Source of the DNA: Selaginella moellendorffii
Taxonomy: Eukaryota; Plantae; Lycopodiophyta
Length of the DNA: 64,000 bases
Reading direction: 5' to 3'
Assembly (NCBI RefSeq): GCF_000143415.4
Contig: NW_003314395.1
Location: 251,862-315,861 of the forward strand
In this document: positions 17,097 to 53,600 of the stretch, piece after piece
How the letters are laid out: the number at the start of each line of letters is the position of its first letter
Position numbering within the stretch: the first letter of the stretch is position 1
Made by a program: the position numbers and the translations under genes
The notes under the pieces: model-generated
Told to the model about the DNA's origin: nothing
Seen by the model: the letters and a program-made list of their open reading frames with translations, nothing else
Databases searched by the model: none

Positions 17097-17118
17097 GTTA
17101 AGTTGGCAGTTGATCCGA

Positions 17119-23765: not shown

Positions 23766-25087
23766 GCTACTAACCAACTTGACCTTTTTATCCGTGGGTT
23801 TGTCTCTTTTTGCTTAACTCCCCCCATGTACTCACTCGCTGATTGCTGGATTTGCCTTTCCGAAACCTTGAGGACTCATTCTTAGAGAAACTCTTTTTGA
23901 ATTTCCCTTTGCTATATGTTCCCTTTGGTTTAGCCCTTTTGCTAAACGTGGACCTTGACCCCGTCGTGTTCCCCTTTCACAGGTTATTGTTGAAATGCAC
24001 CTTGATGGTGTAAGCTCCTGAGTTTGGACTTCCCGGGAGGTCACCCAGCCCAGTACTATTCAAACCTAGGGACGCTTAACCCCAAGTATCCCAAGACCCT
24101 TAACCGATTGGAAAAGGGGGTGCACTCTTGTTCATGGGCCCTTTCCCTCTATATTTGAACCCCTATGGATCGTCTCTCGAGTCGTTCCCTTTGGTTGCTT
24201 ACAGATGGCCACATCTAATGCTTCCTTGTAGTTGGTCGGGTTCCAACGTATCACCTCACCGCAAGCCCAGGTTTGCAAGCCTGATATGAAGGCATGGAAC
24301 ATAACAAATATCCTCTTTGCCATAAACCCATTCACATACTCATGAATGGTTCCGGCCTGCTTCAGCCTACTCAGCTCATCTCTTAGATACAGAGTAGCAT
24401 TCAGAGGAATGTAAGTCGCGCGGATCCTCGCCTTCATCATTTCCCAAGTGGCCACCAGTCTTTCGTTGACATCTGTTGTTTTCCACCAAGACTTGGCATT
24501 ATCTGCCAAGTATGGTTTTGCATATGGGACCTTCTTCGAGCTTGGTAACCGCAACGCTCGGAAGTAGTCCTCCATATCGTAAAACCAATCCTCTACCACC
24601 TTATAGTCATTCACTCCTTTGAAGACTGGTGGGGGCTTTGGTTTATACTTGGGAATTGCTTGAGGGACTGATTCCACTTCGGTCTATTCGACCTTGTTTG
24701 GTTTTGCCTCAAATCCTACCGAAGGGTCCGCACCTTTTGCGCTGCCAATATTTGCAGTCTTTCGCTTTTTCTTCCGCTTCTCGTCACACTTTAGCTTGCG
24801 TATGAGAGTCTCCAACAAGGCATTGGTCTGTGCCAATTGTCCTTCTAGAACGTCCAATCGAGCCTTGAACAACCAAACCTCGCCACCGGACTCCTGTTTG
24901 GAAGTTTCCTCACTAGAGTCCTCCTCAGGCAAGGATTCCTCATCCATAGCCTTTTGTTCCACCGGAGGCTCCAGCTCTGGCGAAGGTTTTGTCTTTGCCT
25001 TGGTTCGTTTATGCCCTGCCTTTGCCATCTCCCAACAATCTGCCTCTATCCTTTGCTAGAACTGAGGAAAACACTCCGATACCAAAT
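23766..25087 (-). mobile_element. Truncated second family-C unit (PBS + gag) sharing the LTR at 25088-26201
   Basis: PBS TGGTATCGGAG directly follows the LTR. Gag KPKPPPVFKG...VEDWFYDMEDYF...LKQAGTIHEY is homologous to 38222-39349. Confidence 0.88.
24009..24203 (-). mobile_element. Solo LTR with a 5S rRNA-derived internal promoter (Cassandra-like), TSD GATGG
   Basis: Termini TGTAAGC...GCTTACA. Minus strand 24081-24026 reads GGTTAAGCGTCCCTAGGTTTGAATAGTACTGGGCTGGGTGACCTCCCGGGAAGTCC, matching the 5S A-box to C-box region. Empty sites at ~38460 and ~48483. Confidence 0.9.
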
Positions 25088-25856
25088 TATAAGTCACAAT
25101 TTTTTCCTTTCCAATTTGCCAACTTACCTCGTCTTTCTGACCAACACTACCTTGGTTTTTGCTAAGTTCCCTCGCCAAAGTTCCCGCCTACTATACCTAA
25201 TCCTACTTGGTTTCAGCTACTCACTGCACGAGCAACGGAGTGTTAGCCATCCATCCACAGATTCCCAAATCTCTCCCAATCCCCCTCCCTGGGTTAGATT
25301 GGACTTAAGGTTCAGCTACACTCCCCGCAGGCACAAGTAGCCAAGCACACCAAGCCTCCAGGTTCCTAACATCCCTTGGTACAACAAGACTTGATCATGG
25401 GACCCTTTAAATCCCAAGCCTTGGGTGCAACACTTGCATCGGGACACTGGGGCGAAACACCGTGGCCTAACGACCTGGTATGGGTACCTCTACCCCGCCA
25501 CTTTTATCCCGAAGGGAAGGCCCAAGCCCCTAGGAAGGGCGAGGACTAATGAGCCACAAGGTATTCAAGTGGGGCACCACTCCACATGAGCCGGGAGCAC
25601 TGCAGTCGGTTTCCCTTTCGGGAGTGGGAGCTGCTCTTGAGCACTTCCTTGGGTGGCCCCTCCGGCACCACCTGAGTTCATACTCACTCCCACCTAAGGC
25701 CCTTTGGCCCCAGTTTCAACCTCAAGTCAATTTGGAAGCACCATTGGAGAGTTCCTGGTTCCTGGACTTCACTATCCCCACTATACTTTTAGAACCCTCT
25801 GCAGCCCCCCCCCGGGAGAGGCACGCTTTGGGCTTTGACCCCTTGACCTGTATTAG

Positions 25857-26115
25857 TACTTGGACTCGGTCTCGGACTTGATCTCAAACCCGACTTCGAA
25901 CTCAGTCTCAGACTCAATCTCGGACTCGATCTCGAACTCGACCTCAGACCCAATCTCGGACTTGACTTTGAACTCTATCTCGAACCAGATCTCGGATCTC
26001 GGACTTTGTCTTGAACTCGGTCTCGAACTCGGTCTCCGAGTCGGTCTCGAACTCGATCCTGGACTCTATCTCGAACTCGGTTTAAGAGTCAGTCTTGGAC
26101 TTGATCTCAGACTTG
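25857..26115. repeat. Degenerate 6/12-bp tandem array (TCTCGGACTCGA-like) inside family-C LTRs
   Basis: Repeated CTCGGA/CTCGAA/CTCGAT units. A similar array sits at ~50241-50500 and a much shorter one at ~40108-40195. Confidence 0.85.
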
Positions 26116-26749
26116 GTCCCATCCAATGAACTCTTTGTCATTTTGGTCATGCTTTCGGGGATCCTTTAGTCTACGACACCTCGGGGAGTTGGTTCCTTAC
26201 AACTCCACCACCCATAGAAGAAGTTTGATGCCCACATCGAACATCTCTTTTTATCCTATGACTTATTGACCATGGTTCCTTACAACTCCACCACCCATAG
26301 AAGAAGTTTGATGCCCACATCGAACATCTCTTTTTATCCTATGACTTATTGACCATGTCTCCGGGGGCATCCCCCTACTTAGCGGTGTGCCTAAGTGTCG
26401 CGAATGTGACTTTGGGTATCGAAAGTTACCTGTCGGCTAGTCCTTTCAGATATTCTTTCCTTACTGCCATGATGGCAGGAGGTCGGTATTGCTGGACCCG
26501 TTATCAGTTTCCCACTTGAGCTAGTTGAGAAACTGGTCGGTATTGCTGGACCCGTTATCAGTTTCCCACTTGAGCTAGTTGAGAAACTGGTCAATGACCG
26601 TGTACTTATATCGGATAAACATAAGGTAGGAACCCTATGTGTTTCTTGCTGAGCATACTCAACCGTGTACTTATATCGGATAAACATAAGGTAGGAACCC
26701 TATGTGTTTTTTGCTGAGCATACTCAGCCTAGTTTGAGAAACTCCTATC

Positions 26750-26943
26750 TGTAAACTCCTGAATTTGGACTTCTCGGGAGGTCACCCAACCCAGTACTAT
26801 TCAAACCCAAGGACGCTTAACCCCAAATATCCCAAGACCCTTAACCAATTGGAAAAGGGGGTGCACTCTTGTTCATAGGCCCTTTCCCCCTATATTTGAA
26901 CCCCATGGATCGTCTCTCGAGTCATTCCCTTTGGTTGCTTACA
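26750..26943 (-). mobile_element. Solo LTR with a 5S-derived promoter (Cassandra-like), TSD CTATC/CTGTC
   Basis: Same 194-bp unit as 24009-24203. Absent from the homologous LTR sites at ~32645 and ~50929. Confidence 0.9.
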
Positions 26944-29900
26944 CTGTCATTAGCTTACACTTGCTAGTATCAAAAACCCCCGCGATATTGAGATTGGTCC
27001 CTCAATATCGCTAAATGATAGCTTACTATGTCGACCAAACACCCTCGCTATCATGCCCTTAGTGTTGGTCTCATTTCGGTCCCAAATGCTATTTATGGAA
27101 AGTGTTCAGATTTGCTCATTTGGCATATCTATAGAATGTAGAGATTGTTCTAAACACAATGGTGTTCGTCCCGTGTCCAAATTCGCAATCTAGGCACATT
27201 CCATATTTAGTAAGTTTCAAGCTTGTTCCAGAGACTAACTCCTGATACTAAGGGAGGCTTGGGGTGAAAGCCCAAAGCATGTGTTCCTCAAGGGGGGAGC
27301 CTATGAGGGGTTCCAAATGTATAGGAGGGATAGTGGGTAGGTCGGGCATGGCCGACCAACCTAATGCATAGTCTAGCTCCTGCTTGCGTGTCTGTCCTTG
27401 TTCTGCGTCCGACTTAAGTCTAAGTCCAAATTCCATTCCATGCTAGCTAGTGGAGTACCCATGTCCTCATGTTAGGCCACCGGTATGCCGAAATAACGCC
27501 AGATTCCGTTTGGCTCCGTTTTGCGTGTTAGTCCTGGCATTGGGATGCTGGTTACTCTAAGACTGTTCCAAGTCGCTCCGGGCTTTTGTCCCTTCGCTCC
27601 TTGGGCTTTATGCTTGGGAGTTGCTCCGTGGTTCGGTTCCATCACTCCTTGGTTACATGCTTGGGAGTTTGGCACCATTCCTTCGTTTAGTGGCCCAAGG
27701 CCTTGAACCTCAGGTTCCACACCACCGTCCTTTGGATATGTGGCATATGACATGTGGCATGTGTCACGTGGCATAAAGAGGGTTTAGGTTCCGCTTCGTA
27801 GTGTTATCCTATGGTAAATCACCATAAGATAAAGGGTCAAAACCACGTGCGCTACATTTGATATCAGAGGATGAGTCTCAGCGAGTACTATTCAATGAGA
27901 TTGGGCAACTAGTCTCGTTGCATACGCAGAGATGAAAACGATGATCCGAGTGGGTACACATTTGGGTGCAAAGGCTTCGCAATTGTTCCTTGGGTATAGA
28001 TTTTATTACCTATTTGTACCGCATTATGTGAGCTTGCTCTTGGGCTCATAAGAAGGATTGAGTTGTATCGTTTGCACGAGTTTGAGCTTGGGCTCGTGAG
28101 TGAAGCACATTAGCAACTTGAGGATACACTTTTAGTTGGCAGGATTAATGTTAGCCTATCGGTGGTTCCATGAGTTGTTCCAATGGTTCCATGAGTTGTT
28201 TTGTGTACCATGGGTGAAAGTAAACCTTCCTTAAGTTTGCTATGAATGGTAAATATGTTGGTCCATAGCTGTTTAGCATGGCACTAGTGGATCCTTCTTA
28301 GGCATGATTACAAGTGGATCAATCAAGACTGTAGGGGTTAGTCTATTGATTCAAATAATCATTGTTGTGCTCTCTCATAAACTTTTCTTGGATTGGACTG
28401 AAGGCAGTGTGAAGTAAGCTTGAGGTTTAGTCAAAGATGAGACTGAAAAGAGAGTTGTCGGGGACGAAGGATCAAACATGTAAATCATTTTCTCTTCTTG
28501 AAGAGATGATTTGCAACAAGGTGTGACTCATTGCTCGTGTTCACATTATGCAATCAAGAGTCCCTACCTTGATGCATGTTGGAGATGATGGTCTTACAAG
28601 TGGTGAGTTATGGGATGGATAACGGTGGAGCGCTATACCATTTTGTCTAGGCTTGATATTGGAAGACTTGGGTTGCAATGCTTAATTCTTTTTTGGGGAA
28701 CTTTGTTATTGCTCCTTGAGTAGTTTGGTGTTGGATTAGTTTTGAATTTGGTCAAAAAGAGAGTGGCATGAGCTTGTCCGTGTTGTGAACAAAAGTTGGT
28801 GGTGTTAGGTGTTGTAAGTCTCTATCAGTAGAGTGTGGCATTTATGTTGTATTTTGTCGAATTAAGTTGGCACTTGATGCTCACATAAACCTTTGAAGTA
28901 ATGACATTGGCATTGCTCATTGTGTTACTCAATTGATGATCAAATCATTGTGATACTTATGTCATATCCATGTGATAATGAGCAATGTGTTTACGAAGTT
29001 GCTTGGTCAAACGATGATCAACCCCAAAGTGGTTGATAGTGAAACTAAGTCTACTTACATGTAGTAGCATTGTAATAGCTTTGACTGGATTCTCAATGGT
29101 GGTCCATTATGTTAAGCTTAAGTTGGTTTCTTGGTTCCTTAAGTTTGCCCATTAAGGTGATGGAAAAAGATTGTAGCATTCATTTGCTATAGCTTGTCGG
29201 TAGATCCGTTAACACTTGGAGTAAATTGTTGGATGGAGAAGATGTGTAGTTGAGACATTGACATCACTAGCATTTGTGTTAGTGGAAGTGGCATTGTTAA
29301 TTCGAGTGATGAGGAATTTTCCTTAAAGCTTGATTTTCCATGTCATTTTTCTTGTTAGTGTTTGGCTTTACATTGGATTTTGAAGATGGTTGAAGAAGAG
29401 TGTTAGTGCAATGAGAATATCCGAAGATATGGTCTTCGTGATTAAGCCTTGGATGTTCACTTTGCATTTTGCAAATGTCGATGTTGGATGTCGGAAGTAT
29501 GGGCAAAAATAAATGTTTGAAGCTTAAGCATACTATGGGTCATAAGAATTTGTGTTGAGGTGAACCTATGTGAAGTTGTTAGGAGGAAGTTGGTTGAGTC
29601 TTGAAAATTTATATTCCTGGACTGAGAGTCATTCTTTCTCTAGGATGGAAAATTTTCCACAAATTTTCTTAGACTTTTCTAATGGCTGATCTGTTGGTCA
29701 TTTTGCTCGAAAACCATTTCGTTTTCATAAGCCACTACAAACTAGTGAAAGGGTTGGAGTTGACTTCGATTGGCTTAGATTTTAGTAGGTAATTTGTATG
29801 ATGCGGCCCGAAAGGGATGTTGACTTTTGGGGCTAAAGCAATTGAGTTGGATAGAGTCTGGAGTTGGTGTAGAAAAGTGACTGTTGTGTTTTTCTAGAAA

Positions 29901-32900
29901 GGTGACCCTTGTGCCTTTCTTTTATAGTGTTATGCTTGGTGGCAGGTTGCACCTTGCATTTCACTAGACTCTATGAGAGTAGTGAGCTCTCACTGATCTT
30001 GACTTGGTCTTGATGGCTTTGCACCTTAGCTGAGGATGGTGATGTCCAACTTAGTTGTTTGCAATTAAGATGTTGGTACCCATACTATAGCTTTGTTTAT
30101 GAGGAGGTTGTATACCGATATGAGTCCATCTTATAGTTTTCACTTTAGTTTCAACTAAGTGTTAATCATGTATAGTTAGATTTCATTGAGTCTTGGATGT
30201 GGTGATTCACTCTTTGAGGAAATGTTATCTGTAACTGAGTTTTGCTGAAGGATTAGTCTCGGGTTAGCTTGGTTGCAAGAGAGTTTTGAGTGGTGATTCA
30301 CTCTTGCTTTCTTCTAAATTTGTTATAGTGTTGATGGCATTGAAGTGATGCCTTGTCATTGATATTATTGATGTTAAGATTCAAGTGAGATGAGATGTCT
30401 ATCCTTAGGATTGATATTGAGTTTTATTACCCTCAATAGACATAGCGTTGATGATTTGGTTATAGCTTTGTGTTATTAGCATTCGTGCATTTATTAGTTA
30501 GCAACTATGTTGATGTTCAAATGAACTGAGTGGCAAATTGAGTTAGTTGTGTTCTAGACAAGATTGTTTAGTAGAGGTTGAGCTTTGGATTTTCCTTGAA
30601 AAAGTGATTTAGTCGTGGATTATGCTAACTCTACAAATGGAAGAGTTAGTGATCGATATTGGAAAGTTTGAATCTTTATTGGGTTTGAGTTGGAATATAT
30701 CAATCATTGATGATTCTTCTGTGCTTGTTATGAAGTGAGTTATGTTTTGCTATAAATGGATTTATAGAGGATCATTTGGTGATCACTTGTCGAGCATAGC
30801 TTTGTTGTGCTTGGCTTTTAGATTGATGCAGATATGCTCTTCATTAGTTTTGCATTATGAAGTTTAGCTTATGGATGTGTTGAGGAGGATATTGTGGGTT
30901 GTATCATGATTTCTTCTTTAGCATTGACGTTAGTTCATGCGAGACTCGTGATCATTATTTGGCAAGACTTGGCTATAAGCTTCTTCGAGCTTTTGGTTCC
31001 TTGAGCTTTCATGCTTGTGGATCATTGGTTAGAAGTTGTTGGGGAAGGCATTTTAATTCATTAGCTTCATTATTGAAGTTAGCATTTGCATCTGGCAATC
31101 ATTGGTAATGATTGACTGTCATCTAAGATAGTTGATTATCCTTGTCAAAGGTGTTGCTTAGTTATTGTTGATATAGAATGATTTGCCATTCTACAGGATG
31201 GTGGATTTCTTCTTTGACAATGATTATGCATCTCTTTATTGATGGGATGATTGATGATCTTTCATGATGGTTAGTTGTTTTCTTTGATAGTTTATGGTTT
31301 TTCGCAATACCACATGTTATTTGTGGTTTGCTCTAGATTGTCTCTTAGGTTTGAGACATCAGTAGGATGTTGCTGACACTTGCTTAGGCAACTTGAGTTC
31401 CATGTTGTTGTTGGCTAGGATCTATTCGGATTGGCTCATGTGATAGTTGGCATGAACAAGTATTTGTTAGCCATGCAACATTCATTCTACTCTGTTGATT
31501 ATTGCTTAAGTTCGCTTTGATAGATTCAGATGTTATTTCCTTTGGATAATACATTCGTGAGCATTTTTTCTTGCTAGTTAATAATACTTTGTGTTCTTTG
31601 AGTTTTCTTCTGCAGGTTGTTTGGCATACTATCTACAATATTTAGTAATTAAGTTTTATCATTGATTTCCTTGATGATACATTGGCTATTAAATTTTGTT
31701 GGATGGTGATTTCTATATTTACCAATTATGATGATCTTGGTGGTTCCTATACTATAATACTAATTTATCGGATGATAACTTACTTGGAATACTCTTGTGT
31801 TCTAATATAAGATTTATTCACTGATAATTAAGATTCTAAGATATCATTGTTTATGACTTTGATATTATCCATCTATTAATCTTTGAATTTTGGGCCAGTA
31901 TAGGCAGACTGGCTTCAGCACTTCGTGTGCATGTTGAAATCTTTAGTCATGGGGTAGCTATTGTCGACTGGTCACATAACCCGCCTCTCTGTTGATGTTC
32001 CTTCTTCCATTAAAAGGGCGTGACCGTGTAAACAATTCTAACTGCCTGTTTACAGTAGTCTATCTAAACCTTACTGACGGGTTTGGTTTCTTTGCTCATG
32101 ACAGTTGGGGCCTTTGGCTTCTCTCTCTATATCCCTGCGGACAGGGGCGTATCACACTTTTATAAGCTGGGTGACAACCAAAGCAGCAAGGGTGGCTAAC
32201 TCAGTTGGTCATTTCTTTGTTGGCGACGGCCGGAAGGTGTCTGAGTTGGTAGCACATCCACGTTAGACAAAGAGGTTACCCCTAACTCATTTAAGTTGGT
32301 GCATTTCTCACATAGTGTGATCACTGTGAACTTTTTCTGGAGTTGTTTCCTTGGCAGTGGTCTAGACTCGAGTATGCATCGACGAAGACGTCGATCTTCC
32401 CTAGGGGGGGAGAGTGTCGCGAATGTGACTTCAGGTATCGAAAGTTATCTGTCGGCTAGTCCTTTCAGATATTCTTTCCTTACTGCCACGATGGCAGGAG
32501 GTCAGTATTGCTGGACCCGTTATCAGTTTCCCACTTGAGCTAGTTGAGAAACTGGTCAATGACCATGTACTTATATCGGATAAACATAAGGTAGGAACCC
32601 TATGTGTTTCTTGCTGAGCATACTCGGCCTGGTTTGAGAAACTCCTATTATTGGCTTGCACTTGCTAGTAGCAAGAACCCCTGCGATATTGAGATTGGTC
32701 CCTCAATATCACTAAATGATAGCTTACTGTATTTACCAAACACCCTCGCTATCATACCCTTAGTGTTGGTCTCATTTCGGTCCCAAATGCTATTTATGGA
32801 AAGTGTCCAGATTTGCTCATTTGGCATATCTACAAAATGTAGAGATTGTCCTAAACACAATGGTGTTCGTCCCGTATCCAAATTCGCAATCTAGGCACAT

Positions 32901-32992
32901 TCCATATTTAGTAAGTTTCAAACCTGTTCCAGAGACTAACTCCTGATACTAAGGGAGGCTTGGGGTGAAAGCCAAAAGCGTGTGTTCCTCAA

Positions 32993-33014
32993 GGGGGGGG
33001 GGGGGGGGGGGGGG
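32993..33014 (+). repeat. G22 homopolymer in the 3' LTR of D
   Basis: 22 consecutive G; other LTR copies have only about 6-7 G here. Confidence 0.9.
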
Positions 33015-36000
33015 TTCCTGTAGGGGGTTCCAAATATATAGTAGGGATAGTGGGTAGGTCAGGCATGGCCGACCAACCTGAGGCATAGTTTAGTTCCCAC
33101 TTGCGTGCTTGTCTTTGTTCTGCGTCCGGCTTGAGTCTAAGTCCAAGTTCCATTCCATGCTAGCTGGTGGAGTACCCATGTCCTCATGTTAGGCCACCGG
33201 TATGCCGAAATAGCGCCAGACTCCGTTTGGCTCCGTTTTGCATGCTGGTCCTAGCATTGGGATGTTGGTTACTCGAAGACTGTTCCAAGTCGCTCCGGGC
33301 TCTTGTCCCTTCGCTCCTTGGGCTTTATGCTCGGGAGTTGCTCTGTGGTTCGGTTCCATCACTCCTTAGCTCCATGCTTGGGAGTTTGGCACCATTCCTT
33401 CGTTCAGTGGCCCAAGGCCCTGAACCTCAGGTTCCACACCACTATCCTTTGGACACGTGGCATATGACATGTGGCATGTGTCACGTGGCATAAAGAGGGT
33501 TTAGGTTCCGCTTTGTAGTGTTATCCTATGGTAAATCACCATAGGATAAAGGGTCAAAACCACGTGCGCTACACTAAGTTAGCCTCCCCGGCCAAGAGCC
33601 CATGACAACGAAATATAGGTGTCTCTAAACCCCTCACCCCACCACGCCCTAGTATGGGGTTAGGACTTTAACCCAGCCTTGCTTTAGTAGGGGGTTGGGA
33701 CTCGAACCCAACCTCTGTAGAATATATCTACGGATTCAACATCCCCATAGGGAGTTGGGCATAGTTCTCTACACCTAGTCGACCTAACTAACCCATGCTA
33801 ATTATCTTACTTTCGGCGCGCCTTCGGGTCCCAACATATACCATTGTTCAACTTCACAAATTGATACTTTAATTGAACTTTGCATAAGTACATAGAATTC
33901 TGCCTTGCAGAAATTCCTTCACCAGATCTCGCGCGTTTGCTAGGTTCTCCTCCGATTCCTATGTTGCTTTGCAATGTGGAAATCCTTTCCACTTCACATG
34001 GAACTCTCACACCTCACGTCCTTGTCACTTACTCTTACGCGTATTGAGGATGGCCTCGACTTCATATTCTTCTTCCCCTTGGATAACCTTACGTAAGGTC
34101 TTACTTGGTCCTTGCGAAGCGGATCCACAAAGTACGGCTTGAGTAAGTTCACATGGAACACTGAGTGCATCTTCCCCATCTCTCGAGGAAGTCGGAGACA
34201 GTAAGCCACTTTACCGATTCGTGCCTAAATCTCAAAAGACCCCATGAAACTACTTAAGGAACTCAAGATCAATTCATTTATAGGAATACATGCATTTTTA
34301 CCTTTGGGTCAACTTTCGGCTGATCCCACTTGGTAACCTGAGGTTCTTGGTGTTCAACCACACTTTCTCCCCAGCTTGGAACTCTACATCCCAACGCTTC
34401 TAGTTCGTGTACTTGGTTTGCCTTTGTTGAGCCCGTTCCAAGGAATCCCTCACTAGATTCCAAATGTTGAGTCTTTCCGCCGTGAATGCCTCCACTACGG
34501 GTAACTCTCCATGATACTCGGCCACACCAAGTTTCACAAGACCTTCAATAGCTCACCCATTGATGACCTCCTATGGACTCACCCCGATACTCGAATGTGG
34601 TGAGTTGTTATAACACATTTCCGCAAGTCCCAAATGACTTACCCAATCGGTCTGGTCTCCCGAGACATAGCATCACAAATAATCCTCTAGCTGCCTATTC
34701 ACCCTTTCCGTTTGTCCGTATGTCAAGAAGTGTTAGTGCCATCAAACTTGACTTAATACCCAATACTTGTCTGTGGGTGATAGGCTCTACTGAATTTCAA
34801 CTTGGTGCGATATTGTTCTAGGAGAGTTCTCCAGAACCTACTGATGAAGATCTTATCTCGATCTGAGATAATCTCTTCTGGCCTTCCCCGCACTTGAACC
34901 ACTTGTTCAAAGAACAGCTTCGCCACACCTTCCGCATCCACTTCTGTTGTGGTGGGTATGAAATGAGCCATCTTTGAAAATGGGTCCACCACCACGAATA
35001 TCGCATCAAACCCCTCACTTGGGGGGAGTCCCGTAATGAAATCCATCATAACACATTTCTACAGACAATTTGGAATTGGGATGCTTTGTAACAAGCCCCC
35101 ACTAGCCTTAGTCACGGCTTTGACCTGTTAACATGTTGGACATGTCTTTACATAGTCTTGGATGTCCTTAGCCATATCTGGCCAGTGGTACTTCCTTTTG
35201 AGTAAGCCCATTGTCTTGGGCACTCCGCCGTGTCCCACAAGAGATCCGTCATGACACTCTTCTAAGGCTACCTTCCTTAGTTCCCCTTCTGGAATATACA
35301 CCCTTGTTTGCTTGTAATAGATGATTCCGTTGCATTCCTCATAGCCCGTTTTCTCTTCCATTGGCAGCTCACCTCTTTAGTGGGCTTCCCGTGCCTCTAG
35401 ATTCCGTAGCAACACTTCTTGTGCTAGACCATTATTCTCATATGCTATCCACACATCACCCCAAAAGGTTGTTGTTGCACTGGATGTTGCTAATTTCAAG
35501 CTCGCTTTTCAACTTAGCGCATCCACCACGATGTTGCTCTTCCCAGGCTTGTACAGAATCTCGCAATCAAACTCAGCCAATGCATTGGCCCACTGACTCT
35601 GTTTCCCTCTCAAAGTCGGGCTGTGACAAGAAGCGTTTCGTTGCCACATTGTCCGTGTAAACCTTGAAGTGTCTCTTAAGGTAATGTTGCCACTCCTTGA
35701 GCGCCTTGACCACCGCAAACAATTCCTTCTCGTTGGCAGGCCACTTCCGTTGAGCCTTGTCCAACTTCTTCGAGAAGAATGCTACTAGATGGTTGTCTTG
35801 CTTCAAAACTACACCCAACGCAAAATCTAAAGCATCTATTTCTATCTTAAAGTCCTTACCAAAATCTGGTAACGCCAACACGGGAGCCTTCCTCAACGTC
35901 CCTTTGAGGTGGACAAATTCCACCTCACATTCTGCTATTTATACCATCTTCCCTTTTCCTATTTGGTCCAGGCTACTCTTGAATAGTGTTTGATAAACTT

Positions 36001-37254
36001 CCAATAGTAGTTGCATAGCCCCAAGAATGCCCTTAACTCGTGTACATTCAATGGTCGCTCCCAATCCAATATCATTTGGACCTTCTCAGGGTCCACCTTG
36101 AGCCCGTCCTTGCCCACCACATGCCCGAGAAACTTTACCTTTTGTTGAGCAAAGTCACATTTGCTCTCTTTAGCATATAACTGGTGTTCCCTTAGTTTCT
36201 CAAACACCTTCGTCAAGTGTTCGGCATGCTCCTCTAACGTTTCGCTATAAATCAGGATGTCGTCAATATAGATGACCACAAAGTGATCCAGATAGGGTAC
36301 AAAGATGTGGTTCATCAACACCGAAAACGTTGCCGGCGCATTGCATAACCCGAAGGGCATCACCAAAAACTCAAAGCTTCCATACCTTGTTCGACAAGTT
36401 GTCTTCTCAACATCTTCCTCTGCTACCATGATCTGGTAGTATCCTGACCTTAGGTTAATCCTCGAGAAATATTTTGCCTTTCCCAACCTACCAAACAGGT
36501 CCTCAATCCTTGGCAAAGGGTACTTGTTCTTCTTTGTATACTTGTTGAGAAACCGATAGTCTATGCACATATGCATAGATCCATCTTTCTTTTTCACAAA
36601 TAACACCAGCGCCCTATACGGCGACTTGCCCAACCTAACATACCCTTTGTTCACCAACTCTAGTTGGCGTTTGAGCTCCTTGAGTTCTTTTTCGTTCAAA
36701 CGATAGGGGGGACGAACCATCACTTCAACAACCTCGACTAGCTCAATCTTATGTTCTATCGATCGTGCAGGGGGTAACCCCTCCAGTAGCTCCTTTAGCA
36801 TGGTATCTTGGAATTGATCCAACACCCGCTGGATCACTAAAGGTACTTTTTTCGTTCCCGTCTTTTTGTCACTTTTCACCGAGAATAAGCACAAAAATGC
36901 TGCCTTGGTTCCTTTAGTGAGTTGTCCTCTCGTGGACACCAGGTTTAGGCAGGAATCTTTAGCCTTGCATTGCCTAACTTTAAATCTTGGGCCTTCACCT
37001 TGGATCTTCCTCCTTAGGCATTTGTTAGTACCACAAGGTTCCTAGCTTGTCCATGCAGGGCTACCATGAACCGATTGAACTAATCCATTCTGAAGATCAC
37101 GTCAAATCCCACTATGTCCAACATGGTGAAATCCATGTCTACTTTTCATGTCCCTACTTCAACTCTCGCTTGTCGAAGTACTTCATCGATGCTTTGGCTA
37201 CCTTGAATAAACTCTATAGTCCTTGGTTCACCCAACCGCTACACCGTTAGTCTG

Positions 37255-37928
37255 TGTAGCACATGTGATTATGGGATGAGATTTGGATATACTATCACCG
37301 TGGATCCTTGGAACCTTGGGGGATAAATGGGGATAAAATAGCCACTAAGGGCTCTCTCATCAAGCAATTGCCCCTTTTTCATTTGGCTTAAGGGGAGAGA
37401 GATAGGGTGCGCTACATGTGGTATAAGAGCAAATGGCAAGAGTTCGATTCCCATTAATTAATGGCTACTTAAAAAATATAATATACCCTTGAGCAAGGTA
37501 TATTTCTATCCCTAAATTTGAAATCGTACGTATTGGGCATCCATGCGTACATCCTTCTTCTTGTGTGGAGTATCCATGGATGAAAATATCCATCATGGGA
37601 CTGTGGTACGGGTGGATGATTAGTTACTTCACATGGAATAGCTAATCTACACAATGGAAGGATTGATAGATTCGGTGCGGAAATGGAGGTGCTGGTTCCT
37701 TTAGCTCAATAGGGGTTGTTAGTCAATAGTCAATGAAGATATTGACATCTCTAAAGGGGGGGTGAGTATAGTGCATGTGATCATGGGATGAAATTTGAAT
37801 ATACTGTCACCGTGGATACTTGGAACCTTGGGGGATAAATGGGGATAAAATAGCCACTAAGGGCTCTCTCATCAAGCAATTGCCCTTTTTTTAGTTGGAT
37901 TAAGGGGAGAGAGATAGGGTGTGCTACA
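37255..37928 (+). mobile_element. TRIM (674 bp): 162-bp LTRs at 37255-37416 and 37767-37928, TSD GTCTG/GTCCG
   Basis: LTR TGTAGCAC...GTGCGCTACA, PBS TGGTATAAGAGC at 37419-37430, PPT AAAGGGGGGGTGAG. Inserted in the protease region of C. Confidence 0.92.
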
Positions 37929-40278
37929 GTCCGGTTTGCCAGACTATGTCTGTAGCCACAAAATTATCCAAAGCACCCGTGTCAATAAGGATCTTAACAA
38001 AATTACCTCCGAGCTTCTCTCGAAAGGCTAGTAAATGTCGCGAACAACTCTCTACCAATATTGCTCGTGTAATGAGTAACTTTGAGCTAGGAACTAGATC
38101 ACATACCTCAGTTTAGATTTCACCCGACTTAATGGCCATATTGGCTCTGACCTTCTTCAAGTAGGGGCATTCCCTCGAAAAGTATCCCGCTTCACCGTAG
38201 TTGTAACATACGTTGTTCCCACACTGCTAACCGACTTAACTTTCTTATCCGTGGGTTTGTCTCTTTTTGCTTGACTCCCCCACATACTCGCTCGCTAGCT
38301 GTCGGATTTGCCTTTCCGGAACCTTAAGGACTCATTATTAGAGAAATTCTTCTTGAATTTCCCTTTGCTATATGTTCCCCTTGGTTTGGCCCCTTTGCTA
38401 AACATGGACCCCGACCCCATCGTGTTCCCCTTTCGCAGGTTATTGTTGAAATGCACCTTGATGGCCACATCCAATGCTTCCTTGTAGTTGGTCAGGTTCT
38501 AACGCCTCACCTCACCGCAAGCCCAGGTTTGCAAGCCTGATATGAAGGCATGGAACACATCCATATCACCCATGTCCGTAACAAGTATCCTTTTTGCTAT
38601 AAATCCATTCACATACTCATGAATGGTTTCGGCCTGCTTCAGCCTACTCAGCTCATCTCTTAGATACAGAGTAACATTCAGAGGAACGTAAGTCGCGCAG
38701 ATCCTCACCTTCATCATTTCCCAAGTGGCCACCAGTCCTTCGTTAGCCTCTGTCGTTCTCCACCAAGACTTGGCATTATCTGCCAAGTATAGTTTTGCAC
38801 ATGGGACTTTCTTCGAGCTTGGTAACCACAACGCTCGGAAGTAGTCCTCCATATCGTAAAACCAATCCTCCACCACCTTATAGTCGTTCACTCCCTTAAA
38901 GACTGGTGGGGGCTTTGGTTTGTACTTGGGAACTGCCTAAGGAATTGATTCCATTTCGGTCTGTTCAACCTTGTTTGGTTTTGCCTCAATCCCTACCGAA
39001 GGGTCCGCACCTTCTATCCTGCCAACATCTGCAATCTTTTGCTTTTTCTTCTGCTTCTCGTCATGTTTTAGCTTGCGTACGAGAGTCTCCAACAAGGCAT
39101 TGGTCTATGTCAATTGTCCTTCTAGAACATCCAATTGAGCCTTGGAAGACCGAACTTCGCCACCAGACTCCTGTTTGGAAGTTTCCTCACTAGAGTCCTC
39201 CTCATCCATAGCCTCTTGTTCCATCAGAGGCTCCAGCTCTGCCGGAGGTTCTGTCTCCGCCTTTATTCATTTACATCCTGCCTTTGCCATCTCCCAGCAA
39301 TCTGCCTCTATCCTTCTCTAGAATTGAGGAAAACGCTCCGATACCAAATTGTAAGCCACAATTTTTTCCTTTCCAATTTATCAGCTTACCTTGTCTTTCC
39401 AACCAACACTGTCTTGGCTTTTGCTAAGTTCTCTCACCAAAGTTCCCACCTATTGTACCTGATCCTACTTGGTTTCAACTACTCACTGCACGAGCAACGG
39501 AGTGTTAGCCATCCATCCACAGATTCCCAAATCTCTCCCAATCCCCTTCCCCGAGTTAGACTGGACTTAAGGTTCAGCTACACTCCCCACAAGCACAAGT
39601 AGCCAAGCACACCAAGCCTCCAGGTTCTTAACATCCCTTGATACAACAAGACTTGATCATAGGACCCTCTAAATCCCAAGCCTTGGGTGCAACACTTGCT
39701 TCGGGACACTGGGGCGAAACACCATAGCCTAACAACCCGGTATGGGTACCTCTACCCCCCCACTTCTATCCCGAAAGGAAGGCCCAAGCCCCTAGGAAGG
39801 GTGAGGGCTAATGAGCCACAAGGTATTCAAGTGGGGCACCACTCCACATGAGCTAGGAGCACTGTAGCCAGTTTCTCTTTCGGGAGTGGGAGCTGCTCTT
39901 GAGCACTTCCTTGGGTGGCCCCTCTGGCACCACCTGAGTCCATGCTCGCTCCCACCCAAGGCCTTTCGGCCCCAGTCTCAACCTCAAGTCAGTTTGGAAG
40001 CACCACTAGAGACTTCGTGACTGATTCCTAGACCTCACTATCCCCACTATACTTTTGGAACCCCTGGGAGACGCACGCTTTGGGCTTTCACCCCTTGACC
40101 TGTATTAGTACTCGGACTCGGTCTCGGATTTGATCTCGGACTCTATCTCAAACTTGGTCTTAAAGTCAGTCTTGAACTCGATCTCAGACCCGGTCCCATC
40201 TGATGAACTTTTTGTCATTTTGGTCATTCTTTCGAGGAACCTTTAGCCTATGACACCTCAAGGAGTTAGTTCCTTACA

Positions 40279-40747: not shown

Positions 40748-41043
40748 TCAATCCTCCATGTTCCCCTGCAATATGGACAGCTCCCCTTCCTTCATAAGTA
40801 TGCCCTCCTCCAGGAGATGAACTCTCTGCTTGAGCACTTCCACCTCGGCACTCATTCGCAGGGCCTCTCATCCCAGTTGCTCCGCCTCGCTTTTGATCGA
40901 GTTCCTCTCCTTTCTCGTTCTCACCAGCTCCTCCTTGACTTTGCTCCAGTCCTGGACCCGATCGTTCAGTCCGCGTTGGAGCCAAGTTATCTTCTCTTCC
41001 TTCTCAGCAAACATCACCCAAGTTCTACCGTCAGAAAAGCAAA

Positions 41044-41089
<46 letters not shown>

Positions 41090-42375: not shown

Positions 42376-42786
42376 GCCTTTTACCACACACCACTGATTT
42401 AAATGAAATGGATATTCTTTAAATGGTAGAAAGCCGCGTGGCCCGTCTATCAACAGTGTGCCTCTTGCGGCCCAGGGAAGAGATGGATGCGTTCGAGCAG
42501 CAGCTGACCAGCGCCGCTGCGCGAGCCAAAGCCAGAGATTCCGCTTCCCTTCGTCCGAGGGAGCTGTGTGGGAGGCAGATCAAGTTTTGGATTGCATAAT
42601 AAAAAGGCGCTGCAGGATGAGATCCAGAAGCTCGAAGCCCATGAGCTGCTTCGATGGATCCGTGATCTACGAGACCAGGCAAAGTTCCAGGACCAAGAGG
42701 TGATAAAGAATTAATAATCTCGGGTTGAGAAAGTCAAGAACGAGGGCTGGAAGAACAGATAGAGATCGAGCGAGTTTCCCTCGTCC

Positions 42787-43974
42787 ATGACGTCTGGATG
42801 TTGCAACCAAGGGTGTTACATGAAAGTGGTGCCCAGTGATCCAGACACTCCCTACGACTTCACACTCCTGGCATTTGCTTTGGCCGCGACAATTCCATTC
42901 ATCGTGGCGAATGGCGCGCTCTTCGCCCATCGCGGGCGCTCCTACTTTCGAGCGCAGGGAGGTGTGTATCTCATCTTAGGGAGTTCGCTAGCGGGCTTAG
43001 TCTGGATAGCAGCCCAGCCCAGTTCGTCAACAATGACCACTTCAGCAGGATCGGGCCGCTCAGGAGCTGCTTGCTGTGGACGTTCTGGCTCCAGGGGACG
43101 GCTATTTGCCTGTGGTTCGTGCTCACTATTCTCCGGCTTGCTCGGATGTACGAGCTCAGCAAGAACATCGACAACTGGTCGTGGAAATACTACGTTTTCG
43201 TCGCCCTGTGCCTGCTTCCCAACGTCATCCTGTCCACCGTTGCTAGCTTGAGTGACTTCCATGAACACGAGAGAAGGTACAGTTCATGGCTTGCGATGTT
43301 TCATCTCTTTCTCTCTCGGACTGATTGCTCTTGATGCCAGCGTTCGGTTGTGCAAGCTAAGCAAGAACTGGAAAACCACCGTCTTCTCCGTGTATACTCC
43401 ATACTGGCTGGTGCTCATCTTCGTCATCTATCAGCTGCGCAACCAGGAGGATCCACTGCTATCTACCGAGTACAGGGACACTGTGGACTACTTGGCTGTG
43501 ACTATCGTCATTATCATGCTCGCCAGCATGGCGGATGTGACGTTAACTAGCGATACTATCCCAGGCAGATGCGCCCTAACGTTTTCAACATGCTGCCTCG
43601 TGTTCTTCAACTTTTGGATACGCTTCGGGTGGCCGATTTATCTGTGTCTCTTCAGGCCCAAAGAGGAGATGGACAACTTCGAGCAGGAGCTAACTTACGG
43701 TGGTGCCCAAGCTCTGGACATGGTTTACAGCCAAAGGATACACTTCCCTTCCTGTGAAGGTGCTATTTGGGAAGCTTTCTCCAAAGCTAGTGACGATTGG
43801 GACAGATACAAGGTAGAGCTTGCTTCTATCTTTTCTTCTTCTTGCTCTCTAGCTAATGCTACACTGAAACAGGATGAAATACGGAAGCTGCAATTGCAGA
43901 AAGCGTTGCTGGAAGGGAAGATCCTAGAGTTACAAGTGCAGAAGAGAAAAGCACTTGGATCTGGTCACTGTTAA
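42787..43974 (+). pseudogene. Frameshifted copy of the RGS1-like 7TM gene
   Basis: About 99% identical to 18317-19499, but a 5-bp duplication AGCCC at 43016-43020 shifts the frame in exon 1. Confidence 0.88.
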
Positions 43975-44064
43975 AGTTATGCTATCTTAATTGACTCTTT
44001 TCTTTGTTTTTGATTCTTTATTTAACTTTCAGTCTAGATCTATCTTCATCATTATATATAGAGA

Positions 44065-48244: not shown

Positions 48245-50698
48245 CGCTACTAACCGATTTGACCTTTTTATCCGTGGGTTTATCTCTTTTTTCTTGACTC
48301 CCCCATGTACTCACTCGCTGGCCGCTGGATTTGCCTTTCCAGAACCCCGAGGACTCATTCTTAAAGAAACTCTTTTTGAATTTCCCTTTGCTATATGTTC
48401 CCCTTGGTTTGGCCCCTTTGCTAAATGTGGACCCTGACCCCGTCGTGTTCCCCTTTCGCAGGTTATTGTTGAAATGCACCTTGATGGCCGCATCCAACGC
48501 TTCCTTGTAGTTGGTCGGGTTCCAACGCATCACCTCACCGCAAGCCCAGGTTTGCAAGCCTGATATGAAGGCATAGAACACATCCATATCACCCATGTCT
48601 GTAACAAATATCCTCTTTACCATAAACCCATTCACATACTCATGAATGGTTCCGGCCTTCTTCAGCGTACTTAGCTCATCTTTTAAATGCAGAGTAGCAT
48701 TCAGAGGAACGTAAGTCGCACGGATCCTCGCCTTCATCATTTCCCAAGTGGCCACCAGTCCTTCGTTGATCTCTGTCGTTCTCCACCAAAACGTGGCATT
48801 ATCTACCAAGTATGGTTTTGCATAGATTGTCTTCTAGGCGATGCAAGCACTGGCCTTCAATGAAGCTCTTGTCCCATTGCTGGTAAAGGAAAAGAAAACC
48901 ATCATATGGGACCTTTTCTGAGCTTGGTAACCGCAACGTTCGGAAGTAATCCTCCATATTGTAAAACCAATCCTCCACCACCTTAACTCCCTTGAAGACC
49001 GGTGGAGGCTTTGGTTTGTACTTGGAAATTATTTGAGGGACTGATTCCACTTCGGTCTATTCAACCTTGTTTGGTTCTACCTCAATTCCTACCGAAGGGT
49101 CCGCACCTTTTATGCTGCCAACATCCGCAGTCTTTCGCTTTTTCTTCCGCTTCTCATCACGCTTTAGCTTGCGTACGAGAGTCTCCAACAGGGCATTAGT
49201 CTATGCCAATTGTCCTTCTAGAACGTCCAATCGAGCCTTGAACAACCAAACCTCGCCACCGAACTCTTGTTTGGAAGTTTCCTCACTAGAGTCCTCCTCA
49301 AGCAAGGATTCCTCATCCATAGCCTTTTGTTCCACCGGAAGCTCCAGCTATGGCGAAGGTTTTATCTTTGCCTTGGTTCGTTTATGCCTTGCCTTTGCCA
49401 TCTCCCAGCAATCTGCCTCTATCCTTTGCTAGAACTGAGGAAAACACTTCGATACCAAATTGTAAGCCACAATTTTTTCCTTTCCAATTTGCCAACTTAC
49501 CTCGTCTTTCCGACCAACACTGCCTTGGCTTTTGCTAAGTTCCCTCACCAAATTTCCCACCTACTATACCTAGTCTTACTTGGTTTCAGCTACTCACTGC
49601 ACAAGCAATGGAGTGTTAGCCATCCATCCACGGATTCCCAAATCTCTCCCAATCCCCCTCCCCGGGTTAGACTGGACTTAAGGTTCAGCTACACTCCCCG
49701 CAGACACAAGTAGCCAATCACACCAAGCCTCCAGGTTCCTAACATCCTTTGGTACAACAAGACTTGATCATAGGACCTTCTAAATCCCAAGCCTTGAATG
49801 CAACACTTGCTTCGGGACATTGGGGCGAAACACCGTGGCCTAACGGCCTGATATAGGTACCTCTACCCCGCCACTTCTATCCCGAAGGAAAGGCCCAAGC
49901 CCCTAGGAAGGGTGAGGACCAATGAGCCACAAGGTATTCAAGTGGGGCACCACTCCACATGAGCCAGAAGCACTGCAGTCGGTTTCCCTTTCGGGAGTGG
50001 GAGCTGCTCTTGAGCACTTCCTTGGGTGGCCCCTCTAGCACCACCTGAGTCCATGCTCACTCCCACCCAAGGCCCTTCGGCCCCAATCTCAACCTCAAGT
50101 CAGTTTGGAAGCACCACTGGAGAGTTCCTTCAAGACTGGTTTCTGGACTTCACTATCCCCACTATACTTTTGGAACCCTCTACAGCCCCCCCCCCCTGGG
50201 AGAGGCACGCTTTGGGCTTTGACCCCTTGACCTGTATTAGTACTCAGACTCAGTCTCGGACTCGATCTCGAACCTGACTTCGAACTCAGTCTCAGACTCA
50301 ATCTCGGACTCGATCTCGGACTCGATCTCGGACTCGACCTCGGACCCGATCTTGGACTCGACTTCGGACCCGATCTTGGACCCAATCTCGGATCTCGGAC
50401 TTTGTCTCGAACTCGCAGTCTCCGAGTCGGCCTCGAACTCGATCCTGGACTCTATCTCGAACTCAGTCTAAGAGTCCGTCTTGGACTTGATCTCAAACCT
50501 GGTCCCATCCAATGAACTCTTTGTCATTTTGGTCATGCTTTCGGGGATCCTTTAGTCTATGACACCTCGGGGAGTTGGTTCCTTACAACTCCACCACCCA
50601 TAAAAGAAGTTTGATGCCCACATCGAACATCTCTTTTTATCCTATGACTTATTGACCATGTCTCCGGGGGCATCCCCCTACTTAGTGGTGTGCCTAAG

Positions 50699-53600
50699 TG
50701 TCGCGAATGTGACTTCGGGTATCGAAAGTTACCTGTCGGCTAGTCCTTTTGGATATTCTTTCCTTACTGCCACGATGGCAAGAGGTTGGTATTGCTGGAC
50801 CCGTTATCAGTTTCCCACTTAAGCTAGTTGAGAAACTGGTTAATGACCATGTACTTAGATCGGATAAACATAAGGTAGGAACCCTATGTGTTTCTTGCTG
50901 AGCATACTCGGCTTAGTTTGAGAAACTCCTGTCATTGGCTTGCACTTGCTAGTATCAAAAACCCCCGTGATATTGAGATTTGTCTCTCAATATCACTAGA
51001 TGATAGCTTACTGTGTTTGCCAAACACCCTCGCTATCATGCCCTTAGTGTTGGTCTCATTTCGGTCCCAAATGCTATTTATGGAAAGTGTCCAGATTTGC
51101 TCATTTGGCATATCTATAAAATGTAGAGATTGTCCTAAACACAATGGTGTTCGTCCCATGTCCAAATTCGCAATCTAGGCACATTCCATATTTAGTAAGT
51201 TTCGAGTTTGTTCCAGAGACTAACTCCTGATAATAAAGGAGGCTTGGGGTGAAAGCTCAAAGCGTGTGTTCCTCAAGGGGGGGAGCCTATGGGGGGTTCC
51301 AAATGTATAGTAGGGATAGTGGGTAGGTCAGGCATAGCCAACCAACTTAAGGCATATTCTAGCTCCCGCTTGCGTGCCTGTCCTTGTTCTGTGTCCGGCT
51401 TGGGTCTAAGCCCAAGTTCCATTCCATGCTAATTGGTGGAGTACCCATGTCCTCACGTTAGGCCACTGGTATGCCGAAATAGCGCCAAACTCCGTTTGGC
51501 TCCATTTTGCATGCTGGTCTTGGCATTGGGATGCTGGTTACTCTAAGACTGTTCCAAGTCGCTCCGGGCTCTTGTCCCTTCGCTCCTTGGGCTTTATGCT
51601 CGGGAGTTGTTTTATGGTTCGGTTCTATCACTCCTTGGCTCCATACTTAGAAGTTTGGCACTGTTCCTTCGTTCAGTGGCCCAAGGCCCTGAACCTCGGG
51701 TTCCACACCACTGTCCTTTGGACACGTGGCATATGACACATAGCATGTGTCACATGGCATAAAGAGGGTTTAGGTTCCGCTTCGTAGTGTTATCCTATGA
51801 TAAATCACCATAGGATAAAGGGTCAAAACCACATGCGCTACATTTGGTTTCAGAGGATGAGTCTCAGTGAGTACTATTCAATGAGATTGGGCAACTAGTC
51901 TCGTTGCATACGCAGAGATGAAAATGATGATCCGAGTGGGTGCATGTTTGGGTGCAAAGGCTTTGCAATTGTTCCTTGGGTATGGATTTTATTACCTATT
52001 TGTACTACATTATGTGAGCTTGCTCTTGGGCTCATAAGAAGGATTGAGTTGTATCATTTGCACGAGTTTGAGCTTAGGCTCGTGAGTGAGGCACATTAGC
52101 AACTCGAGGATACACTTTTAGTTGGCAGGATTAATGTTAGCCTATCGGTGGTTCCATGAGTTGTTCCAGTGGTTCCATGAGTTGTTTTGTGTACCATGGG
52201 TGAAAGTAAACCTTCCCTAAGTTTGCTATGAGTGGTAAATATCCTGGTCCATAGCTGTTTAGCATGACACTAGTGGATCCTTCTTAGGCATGATTACAAG
52301 TGGATCAATCAAGACTGTAGGGGTTAGTCTATTGATTCAAGTAATCATTGCCGTGCTCTCTCATAAACTTTTCTTGGATTGGGCTGAAGGCAGTGTGAAA
52401 GCAAGCTTGAGGTTTAGTCAAAGATGAGACTGAAAAGAGAGTTGTCAGGGACGAAGGATCAAACATGTAAATCATCTTCTCTTCTTAAATAGATGATTTG
52501 CAACGAGGTGTAACTCATTGCTCGTGTTCACATTATGCAATTAAGAGTCCCTACCTTGATGCATGTTGGAGATAATGGTCTTACAAGTGGTGAGTTATGG
52601 GATGGATAACGGTGGAGCGCTATACCATTTGGTCTAGGCTTGCTATTGGAAGACTTGGGTTGCAATACTCAATTCTTTTTTGGGGAACTTTGCTATTGCT
52701 TCTTGAGTAGCTTGGTGTTAGATTAGTTTTGAGTTTGGTCAAAAAGAGAGTGTCATAAGCTTGTCTGTGTTGTGAACAAAAGTTGGTGTGTTGGGTGTTG
52801 TAAGTCTCTATCGGTAAAGTGTGGCATTTATGTTGCATTGGCAGACACAGTAAGCTATCATCTAGCGATATTGAGGGACCAATCTCAATATCGCAGGGGT
52901 TCTTGATACCATCATATCAAGAACTCATAAGCCAATGACAAGAGTTTCTCAAACCAGGCCGAGTATGCTCAGCAAGAAACACATAGGGTTCCTACCTTAT
53001 GTTTATCCGATCTAAGTACACGGTCATTGACTAGTTTCTCAACTAGCTCAAGTGGGAAACTGATAACGAGTCCAGCAATACCGACCTCCTGCCATCGTGG
53101 CAGTAAGGAAAGAATATTCGAAAGGACTAGCCAGCTGGTAACTTTCGATACCTGAAGTCACATTCGCGACACTCTCCCCCCCTAGGGAAGATTGATGTCC
53201 TCGTCGATGCATACTCGAGTCTAGACCACTGCCAAGGAAACAACTCTAAAAAAAGTTCACGGTGAACACACTATGTGAGAAATGCACCAACTTAAATGAG
53301 TTAGGGGTAACTTCTTTGTCTAACACGGATGCACTACCAGCTCAGACACCTTCCGGCCGTCGCTGACAAGGAAATGACCAACTAAGTTAGCCACCCTTGT
53401 GTAAGCTCCTGAGTTTGGACTTCCCGGGAGGTCACCCAGCCCAGTACTATTCAAACCCAAGGACACTTAACCCCAACTATCCCAAGACCCTTAACCGATT
53501 GGAAAAGGGGGTGCACTCTTGTTCATGGGCCCTTTCCCTCTATATTTGAACCCCATGGATCGTCTCTCAAGTCGTTCCCTTTGGTTGCTTACACCTTGCT

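Follow-up and report, generated by a model that had tools for sequence, protein, structure and literature searches.

Cassandra elements, miniature terminal-repeat retrotransposons (TRIMs) whose long terminal repeats (LTRs) carry 5S rRNA sequence, have been reported from ferns, monocots and eudicots and not from gymnosperms, and lycophytes go unmentioned (PMC10946416, PMC10853983). The literature that we searched likewise contains Cassandra-type elements from ferns and angiosperms only, with no report from a lycophyte. The origin of Cassandra is dated to the common ancestor of ferns and angiosperms, and no autonomous partner is known (PMC10886601, PMC10946416). Known Cassandras share just a core of about 70 bp, and in Polypodiales their LTRs are about 200 bp long (PMC10853983). 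In fern elements the primer binding site (PBS) lies 8 nt from the 5S part, which places the 5S sequence at the 3' end of the LTR (PMC7215508). A complete Cassandra measures about 560-970 bp and is made up of two LTRs around a short non-coding interior, with an initiator-Met tRNA PBS directly after the 5' LTR and a polypurine tract ahead of the 3' LTR. Eight TRIM subfamilies have been described in the lycophyte Selaginella moellendorffii, none of them labelled Cassandra (Gao et al. 2016, PMC4717578), and according to a 2024 review no short interspersed elements (SINEs) derived from 5S are known in plants (PMC10946416). In this paper we analyse 64 kb of S. moellendorffii scaffold GL377699.1, which we call the window, and three short repeat units in it, U1 to U3, that carry 5S-like sequence. 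A preliminary description, made from the sequence alone, had rightly placed them in a lycophyte-type genome. We interpret the units as solo LTRs of a Cassandra-type non-autonomous LTR retrotransposon with an RNA polymerase III (Pol III) promoter, a "TRIMp3" in Kojima's term, and give this reading a probability of roughly three in four.

Ends, target sites and age of the three units

The units occupy positions 24009-24203 (U1, 195 bp), 26750-26943 (U2, 194 bp) and 53400-53593 (U3, 194 bp), each with the minus strand as sense strand. They are 93.8-96.9% identical in pairwise comparison, 181 of the 195 columns of their alignment are invariant, and a BLAST search of the whole window with E up to 1e-3 found no copy beyond these three. 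All of them end in GCTTACA and start with TGTAAGC, or TGTAAAC in the case of U2. Each has its own 5-bp target site duplication (TSD): GATGG at 24004-24008 and 24204-24208 around U1, CTATC at 26745-26749 and CTGTC at 26944-26948 around U2, and CCTTG at 53395-53399 and 53594-53598 around U3. These are the termini and duplications of the preliminary description, with the addition that the U2 pair contains one mismatch.

The local duplication described below makes it possible to see the sites without the units. When the window is compared with itself, alignments end at the edges of each unit and, at the corresponding paralogous position, share an overlap of exactly 5 bp. The empty sites can be read directly and are uninterrupted: GATGG at 48483-48487 and 38460-38464 for U1, CTGTC at 50929-50933 and CTATT at 32645-32649 for U2, and CCTTG (reverse complement) at 32187-32191 for U3. 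The absence of the units from their paralogous sites, as previously claimed, is therefore exact in all three cases. Filled and empty sites differ by the TG...CA-ended unit and one copy of its 5-bp TSD only, as is characteristic of solo LTRs. The flanks are host sequence that continues across the paralogous sites, and the units consist of LTR alone, with no PBS or polypurine tract (PPT) within or beside them. Their 3' ends have no A-rich, simple-repeat or LINE-like tail, and the TSD is fixed at 5 bp in 3/3 units. The TG...CA ends together with the exact 5-bp duplications indicate that the integrase of an LTR retrotransposon made the insertions, and the earlier view of the units as insertions of integrase type with a promoter module derived from 5S sequence is supported.

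U1 is found in a truncated second copy of a Ty3/gypsy family that we call family Z, U2 in the 5' LTR of a non-coding LTR element, element W, and U3 in the inverted interior of W in the second copy of the duplication. It is thus true, as had been stated, that LTR-only units landed inside other retroelements in every case. This tells us little about target choice, because most of that region is retroelement. We also considered whether U1 and U2 could be the LTR pair of one 2.9-kb element, and rejected this on account of their separate TSDs and of the intervening DNA, which is continuous host sequence in copy 2. Just left of U2, at 26273-26749, there are small local tandem duplications in which pieces of 58-85 bp are repeated, and because of these our first self-alignment stopped short of the left edge of U2.

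The duplicated block comprises a gene and the retroelement nest and is about 22 kb long, with 17486 to about 40300 corresponding to 42016-64000 at 93-94% identity; in copy 2 the part 52838-57319 is inverted. The Kimura two-parameter (K2P) distances are 0.026-0.060 among the units and 0.057-0.081 between the duplicated blocks. These values and the empty sites show that the unit insertions post-date the local duplication, in agreement with the earlier claim that all three inserted after it. Nearly all differences between the units are transitions, and the 5S half is not better conserved than the rest, since 8 of the 14 variable columns fall there. The transition bias fits silent decay of the units.

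Two further observations on the duplicated region can be mentioned here. A 406-bp single-copy stretch in copy 2 (55638-56043) is missing at 30175-30179 of copy 1; we rejected it as a further insertion, as it has neither TG...CA ends nor a clear duplication, and regard it as a plain indel. The other haplotype (GL377574.1:2763866-2785407) is 96.1% identical to the window over 8057-19589 and then jumps to 40428. Within its 21.5 kb there is no counterpart of 19590-40427, and tandem gene units of about 3.7 kb without the retroelement nest are found instead.

The 5S-like module and a possible transcript

Read in the sense direction, each unit is composed of 104 nt of non-5S sequence, an 88-nt 5S-rRNA-like module and a final ACA, with the module ending 3 nt short of the LTR end. 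The modules lie on the minus strand at 24012-24099 in U1 (box A 24070-24081, box C 24039-24051), 26753-26840 in U2 (box A 26811-26822, box C 26780-26792) and 53403-53490 in U3 (box A 53461-53472, box C 53430-53442). They score 38.1, 33.9 and 31.8 bits, respectively, against Rfam RF00001 (5S_rRNA), whose gathering score is 38.0 bits, and are the sole Rfam matches in the searches made. The match spans model positions 1-120 with 32-36 positions deleted from its first half. The minus-strand 5S match of the preliminary description is therefore present in all units, with a length of 88 nt and not the 56 bp reported there. The box A and box C motifs published for Cassandra (PMC7215508) occur in every unit, each with a single mismatch, and the 18 nt between them is exactly the distance given in that paper. 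No other composite of box A, 18 nt and box C exists in the window. All three units are thus LTRs with a 5S-derived box A, intermediate element and box C. As in the Ajax elements of nemerteans (PMC10886601), the 88-nt module has the appearance of a promoter and not of a functional rRNA.

The upstream half contains two further motifs. A TATA-like AATATAG occupies alignment columns 49-55 on the minus strand (24149-24155 in U1, 26890-26896 in U2 and 53540-53546 in U3). A run of four T residues (T4) is found at columns 89-92 (24112-24115, 26853-26856 and 53503-53506, also on the minus strand) and is the only one on the sense strand; no T run follows the 5S module in any unit, the sole T4 lying upstream of the Rfam-aligned module. 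The T4 is a candidate weak Pol III terminator and candidate end of the repeated region (R) of a transcript. The distance of the TATA-like box from the transcription start varies with the start that is chosen: the box is 19-25 nt upstream if +1 is derived from the canonical box A distance, and 50-56 nt upstream if one counts from the point where the Rfam-aligned module begins. The earlier placement of AATATA about 20-25 nt before +1 accordingly holds for the former start and not for the latter.

We propose the following history for the units. A short non-autonomous LTR retrotransposon would have inserted three times into an older, already duplicated retroelement nest. Each copy would then have lost its interior and one LTR via LTR-LTR recombination, and all three copies would now be decaying through C-to-T transitions. 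The LTR is built like that of a fern-type Cassandra, from an upstream half of about 104 nt with the TATA-like box and T4, and a truncated 88-nt 5S module in which box A, the intermediate element and box C are retained. For type-1 promoters, a distance of about 50 nt between transcription start and box A is established. If Pol III, recruited by the 5S internal control region of a two-LTR copy, keeps to this distance, it would start near column 74, and the TATA-like box would then lie at -25 to -19 and the T4 at +16 to +19. A transcript that begins at column 74 in the 5' LTR and ends with the T4 (columns 89-92) in the 3' LTR would have an R of about 19 nt. This predicted length is close to the 18-nt R of Cassandra, for which 18-bp terminal duplications are given (Kojima 2024, PMC10886601). 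We rejected a Pol III start at the 5' end of the module (column 105), for which the T4 of the 3' LTR would end the transcript before any repeat and therefore leave no replicable RNA. For reverse transcription and integration the element would depend on supply in trans, for which the Ty3/gypsy family Z is the best candidate.

Family Z and the surrounding retroelements

The nest of LTR elements begins at about 19.9 kb and continues onward in the window. Family Z, the "family C" of the preliminary description, is a Ty3/gypsy element on the minus strand. Its 5' LTR (39350-40278, minus strand; sense TGTAAGGAACTAA...GGCTTACA) is followed by an initiator-Met-type PBS at 39335-39346. The interior (33574-39349, minus strand) holds this PBS and gag-pol as one broken gene region with Pfam matches to gag, reverse transcriptase, RNase H, integrase core and a Tf2-type SH3 domain. 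A purine-rich tract precedes the 3' LTR (25088-26201, minus strand; sense 5' end TGTAAGGAACCAA), and the PBS and gag of the truncated second Z copy (23764-25087), the host of U1, adjoin this LTR on the opposite side. The corresponding LTR in copy 2 of the duplication (49461-50587, minus strand) has the same termini. With a polypurine tract on one side and PBS and gag on the other, the LTR at 25088-26201 (49461-50587 in copy 2) serves two Z interiors, as in tandem LTR-interior arrays.

The ends of the units agree with those of the Z LTRs. The units begin TGTAAGCAACCAA, and the Z LTRs begin TGTAAGGAACCAA (LTR copies A and B) or TGTAAGGAACTAA (5' LTR), so that 12 of the first 13 nt agree with copies A and B and 11 of 13 with the 5' LTR, and the last 7 nt (GCTTACA) are identical (7/7). 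Allowing up to two mismatches, the 13-mer of the unit has seven matches in the window, all of them at unit ends, at Z LTR ends or at a local duplicate of one. The chance expectation is 2.09 in 128 kb (both strands), and no shuffled sequence reached seven. In this comparison the 5S sense of the unit is also the sense of Z, which independently supports the orientation that we give to the LTR. The match with the family's LTR ends that had been claimed before is thus confirmed, and is stronger than was stated (12/13 and 7/7). Such a match is the pattern expected if a small element depends on the integrase of Z, and among the elements of the window the shared termini make Z the best candidate for a partner. 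The proposal that Z may be the autonomous partner gains support in this way; on the other side of the balance, the chromodomain expected of the named partner was not found. In the reading-frame pieces downstream of the integrase SH3 domain, in both (degraded) Z copies, Pfam Chromo gave no match with E up to 0.1-1. The label "chromovirus" that the family had been given is accordingly not borne out by the integrase tails of the window, which belong to degraded copies.

Element W interrupts family Z 111 bp from the 3' LTR of the latter, and both W and a 674-bp TRIM are nested in or next to the interior of Z. W is a non-coding LTR element resembling a large retrotransposon derivative (LARD), found on the plus strand at 26396-33573. 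Its LTRs of 1.16 kb (26396-27856 and 32415-33573, TGTCG...CTACA) are flanked by the TSD CTAAG, a PBS-like sequence follows the 5' LTR, and the interior of 4.5 kb contains no open reading frame (ORF) of 90 aa or more; its counterpart in copy 2 lies in 50699-57769. The 674-bp TRIM is complete, belongs to another family and is found at 37255-37928 on the plus strand, nested in the interior of Z. Its LTRs are 162 and 166 bp long and about 92% alike, its flanks are GTCTG and GTCCG, a PBS-like TGGTATAAGAGC follows 2 nt past the 5' LTR, and a purine run precedes the 3' LTR. The last 10 nt of its LTR (GTGCGCTACA) are the last 10 nt of the W LTR (10/10), which shows that the sharing of termini between a small and a large LTR element recurs in this genome.

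More Ty3/gypsy fragments are found on the plus strand at 2483-3844 and 4472-5798, upstream of the genes, with integrase zinc-binding, integrase core and SH3 domains. They include an RNase H/integrase stretch 83% identical to 22437-23764 and contain no chromodomain. The genes of the window were searched piece by piece. Introns of about 45-95 bp interrupt a vacuolar-sorting-receptor gene (11242-13730), and an ORF for a HAD-hydrolase has its best match by far in S. moellendorffii. The locus of the second allele of this hydrolase, GL377699.1:257435-278957 in GCA_000143415.2, is 100% identical to positions 5574-27096, from which the window is placed at roughly 251862-315861 of that scaffold. The plus-strand ORFs at 18317-19499 and 42787-43974 were considered as retroelement gag and rejected, as they represent a conserved plant gene, similar to S. 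moellendorffii LOC9654119 (352 aa), with homologues in Diphasiastrum, Adiantum, Psilotum and Riccia and no Pfam hit. Exact look-ups of the ORFs of the window returned no record.

Alternative readings and relation to known systems

The Cassandra-type reading follows from the length of the LTR and the placement of the 5S sequence, which fit fern Cassandra. Of the two options that the preliminary description had left side by side, a Cassandra-like family and a Pol III unit of SINE type inserted in the form of a single LTR, it is the former that agrees with box A and box C 18 nt apart, with an LTR of about 200 bp and with 5S sequence at the 3' end of the LTR as in ferns.

Several observations weigh against this reading or against family Z as its partner. 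The 5S scores lie at or below the Rfam gathering score; in evolutionary terms, moreover, the three copies are to be counted as a single event. The folding energy of the 88-nt module is unexceptional (z about 0 on both strands), so that there is no stable 5S-like fold. Non-Cassandra TRIM families, including the eight of S. moellendorffii, are reported to contain no 5S sequence (Gao et al. 2016, PMC4717578). A weak point of the proposed transcript is the T4 of the 5' LTR, only 16-19 nt past the predicted start, which Pol III would have to pass without stopping. The broken pol region of Z has two or more frame changes and one or more in-frame stops, and beyond the termini the unit and the Z LTR show no similarity above shuffled controls. 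Finally, the S. moellendorffii DNA searched for unit copies, that is the 64-kb window and 43 kb of other loci, contains no two-LTR copy, PBS, PPT or interior of the unit family. The 43 kb, which include the other haplotype and one unrelated locus, contain no copy of the unit at all. Public collections scanned with a unit-specific 20-mer gave four metagenome matches and one bacterial match, which are chance matches of the 20-mer only.

Whether three solo LTRs out of three copies is a surprising outcome depends on the published ratios. For Cassandra in pear the ratio of solo to intact copies is 0.88:1 (PMC4079214), and at this ratio 3/3 solos would have a probability of about 0.06, a further point on the unfavourable side. 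Many TRIM families consist mostly of solo and fragmentary copies (PMC4717578 Table 1; PMC10886601). The TRIMs of S. moellendorffii include 1,177 complete elements among 10,158 copies (PMC4717578 Table 1), Ajax-1_LiLo has 1,114 LTRs and 151 interiors, and some Helenus families are left without any full-length copy (PMC10886601). Because these ratios span such a wide range, 3/3 solos is uninformative. The very efficient solo-LTR formation that had been suggested for the units is not needed, as the count falls within the published TRIM range, from 0.88:1 to no full-length copy.

The strongest rival, which we nevertheless consider unlikely, is that the units are solo LTRs of a larger element, either a LARD or an autonomous element with short LTRs, in which the 5S sequence is a passenger and transcription by RNA polymerase II (Pol II) starts from the TATA-like box. 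This box is found 48-49 nt from the 5' end of the LTR, which is the Pol II TATA position in Cassandra-like TRIMs without 5S (Maiwald et al., PMC10853983), and, since only LTRs are seen, the parent may be of any size. The window holds no coding element with such LTRs, however, and a length of 195 bp is typical for the LTRs of TRIMs, of which 68% are shorter than 250 bp (PMC4717578). A passenger might be expected to look like the 5S module in so far as this is truncated and without a notable fold, but box A, intermediate element, box C and their 18-nt spacing have been kept although the 5S sequence ahead of box A was partly deleted or replaced. Such retention is the pattern of promoter-only modules such as Ajax (PMC10886601).

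It is far more questionable whether the 195-bp unit could itself be mobile, as a Pol III transcript of SINE type that is copied into DNA and then inserted by a Ty3/gypsy integrase as a single LTR, and that never had a second LTR or an interior. Such a hybrid between a SINE and an LTR element would be of interest if true, and the 5S internal promoter, the termini matching family Z and the occurrence of 3/3 copies as single units with their own TSDs would all agree with it. We regard it as very improbable. Besides both integrase ends, every copy still has a stretch of 73-104 nt, with the TATA-like box in it, that lies upstream of whatever start is plausible. A one-unit transcript cannot carry this stretch, since an internal promoter starts transcription inside the unit, and its regeneration needs a two-LTR template and strand transfers. 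The units also do not begin at a Pol III start, as a SINE would, have no A-rich or LINE-like tail and no TSD of variable length, and neither PBS nor PPT is found within or beside them; 3/3 solos are within the ordinary TRIM range. The SINE-like option of the preliminary description is thus unsupported. The least credible explanation is a miniature inverted-repeat transposable element (MITE) with a chance 5S fragment, whose transposase makes 5-bp duplications: the small size, fixed 5-bp TSD and perfect 7-bp terminal inverted repeat (TGTAAGC...GCTTACA) would suit it, but this repeat is short for a MITE, TG...CA ends with a 5-bp TSD are the signature of LTR-retrotransposon integrase, the first 13 nt, read in the 5S sense direction, correspond to the 5' end of an LTR family read in its own sense direction, and no plant DNA-transposon superfamily is known to combine 5-bp TSDs with TGT...ACA ends.

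If our interpretation of the units as Cassandra-type solo LTRs is correct, a 5S-promoter LTR family in Selaginella means either that the lineage reaches the base of the vascular plants or that there was a further independent capture of a 5S promoter. We tentatively suggest that this could be the first Cassandra-type lineage in a lycophyte with an identifiable Ty3/gypsy partner, a combined claim that we hold to be possible and somewhat doubtful. The terminus match to a co-resident Ty3/gypsy family provides a concrete candidate partner that can be checked genome-wide. The unit family may already be present in existing repeat libraries, and its 5S sequence could have been overlooked, because the truncated module scores at or below the Rfam threshold. 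Conversely, units of this kind can pass for 5S genes or pseudogenes in annotation, as one copy reaches the Rfam gathering score.

Among the known systems, SINE3 and other 5S-derived SINEs are, like the units, short non-coding repeats with an internal Pol III promoter of the 5S type. They differ in that SINEs begin at the transcription start, carry a LINE-related or simple-repeat tail and have variable TSDs, whereas the units possess an upstream half that would not be transcribed, TG...CA ends and fixed 5-bp TSDs. The small LTR elements SmoRetroS1-8 come from the same genome and are reported to lack 5S sequence (Gao et al. 2016, PMC4717578), by which the units would differ from them. In the pair SmoRetroS4/SmoLTRA4 the LTRs of a small element resemble those of a Ty3/gypsy element proposed as its autonomous partner (PMC4717578), which is similar to the relation proposed here for the units and family Z. 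However, the 104-bp LTRs of SmoRetroS4 are 98% identical to those of the partner, while the unit and Z share the terminal 13 and 7 nt only.

The Ajax TRIMs of nemerteans (Kojima 2024, PMC10886601) are closer in organisation, since their LTRs contain a partial 5S sequence that is essentially reduced to the promoter motifs and unlikely to be a working 5S rRNA. They also have 5-bp TSDs, and their solo LTRs far exceed their interiors. Ajax is found in animals, however, has a PBS for Leu-tRNA and has been proposed to originate from the insertion of a SINE3. From Cassandra the units differ in being known as solo LTRs alone, without a Met-tRNA PBS, PPT and short interior in view, in the shortening of the 5S part to 88 nt, in having their only T run upstream of the Rfam-aligned module, and in their lycophyte host. 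The features shared with the Cassandra elements of ferns and angiosperms (PMC7215508, PMC10853983) are a 5S control region in the LTR with box A and box C 18 nt apart, TG...CA ends, 5-bp TSDs and common solo LTRs, together with an LTR of about 200 bp as in Polypodiales and 5S sequence near the 3' end of the LTR as in ferns.

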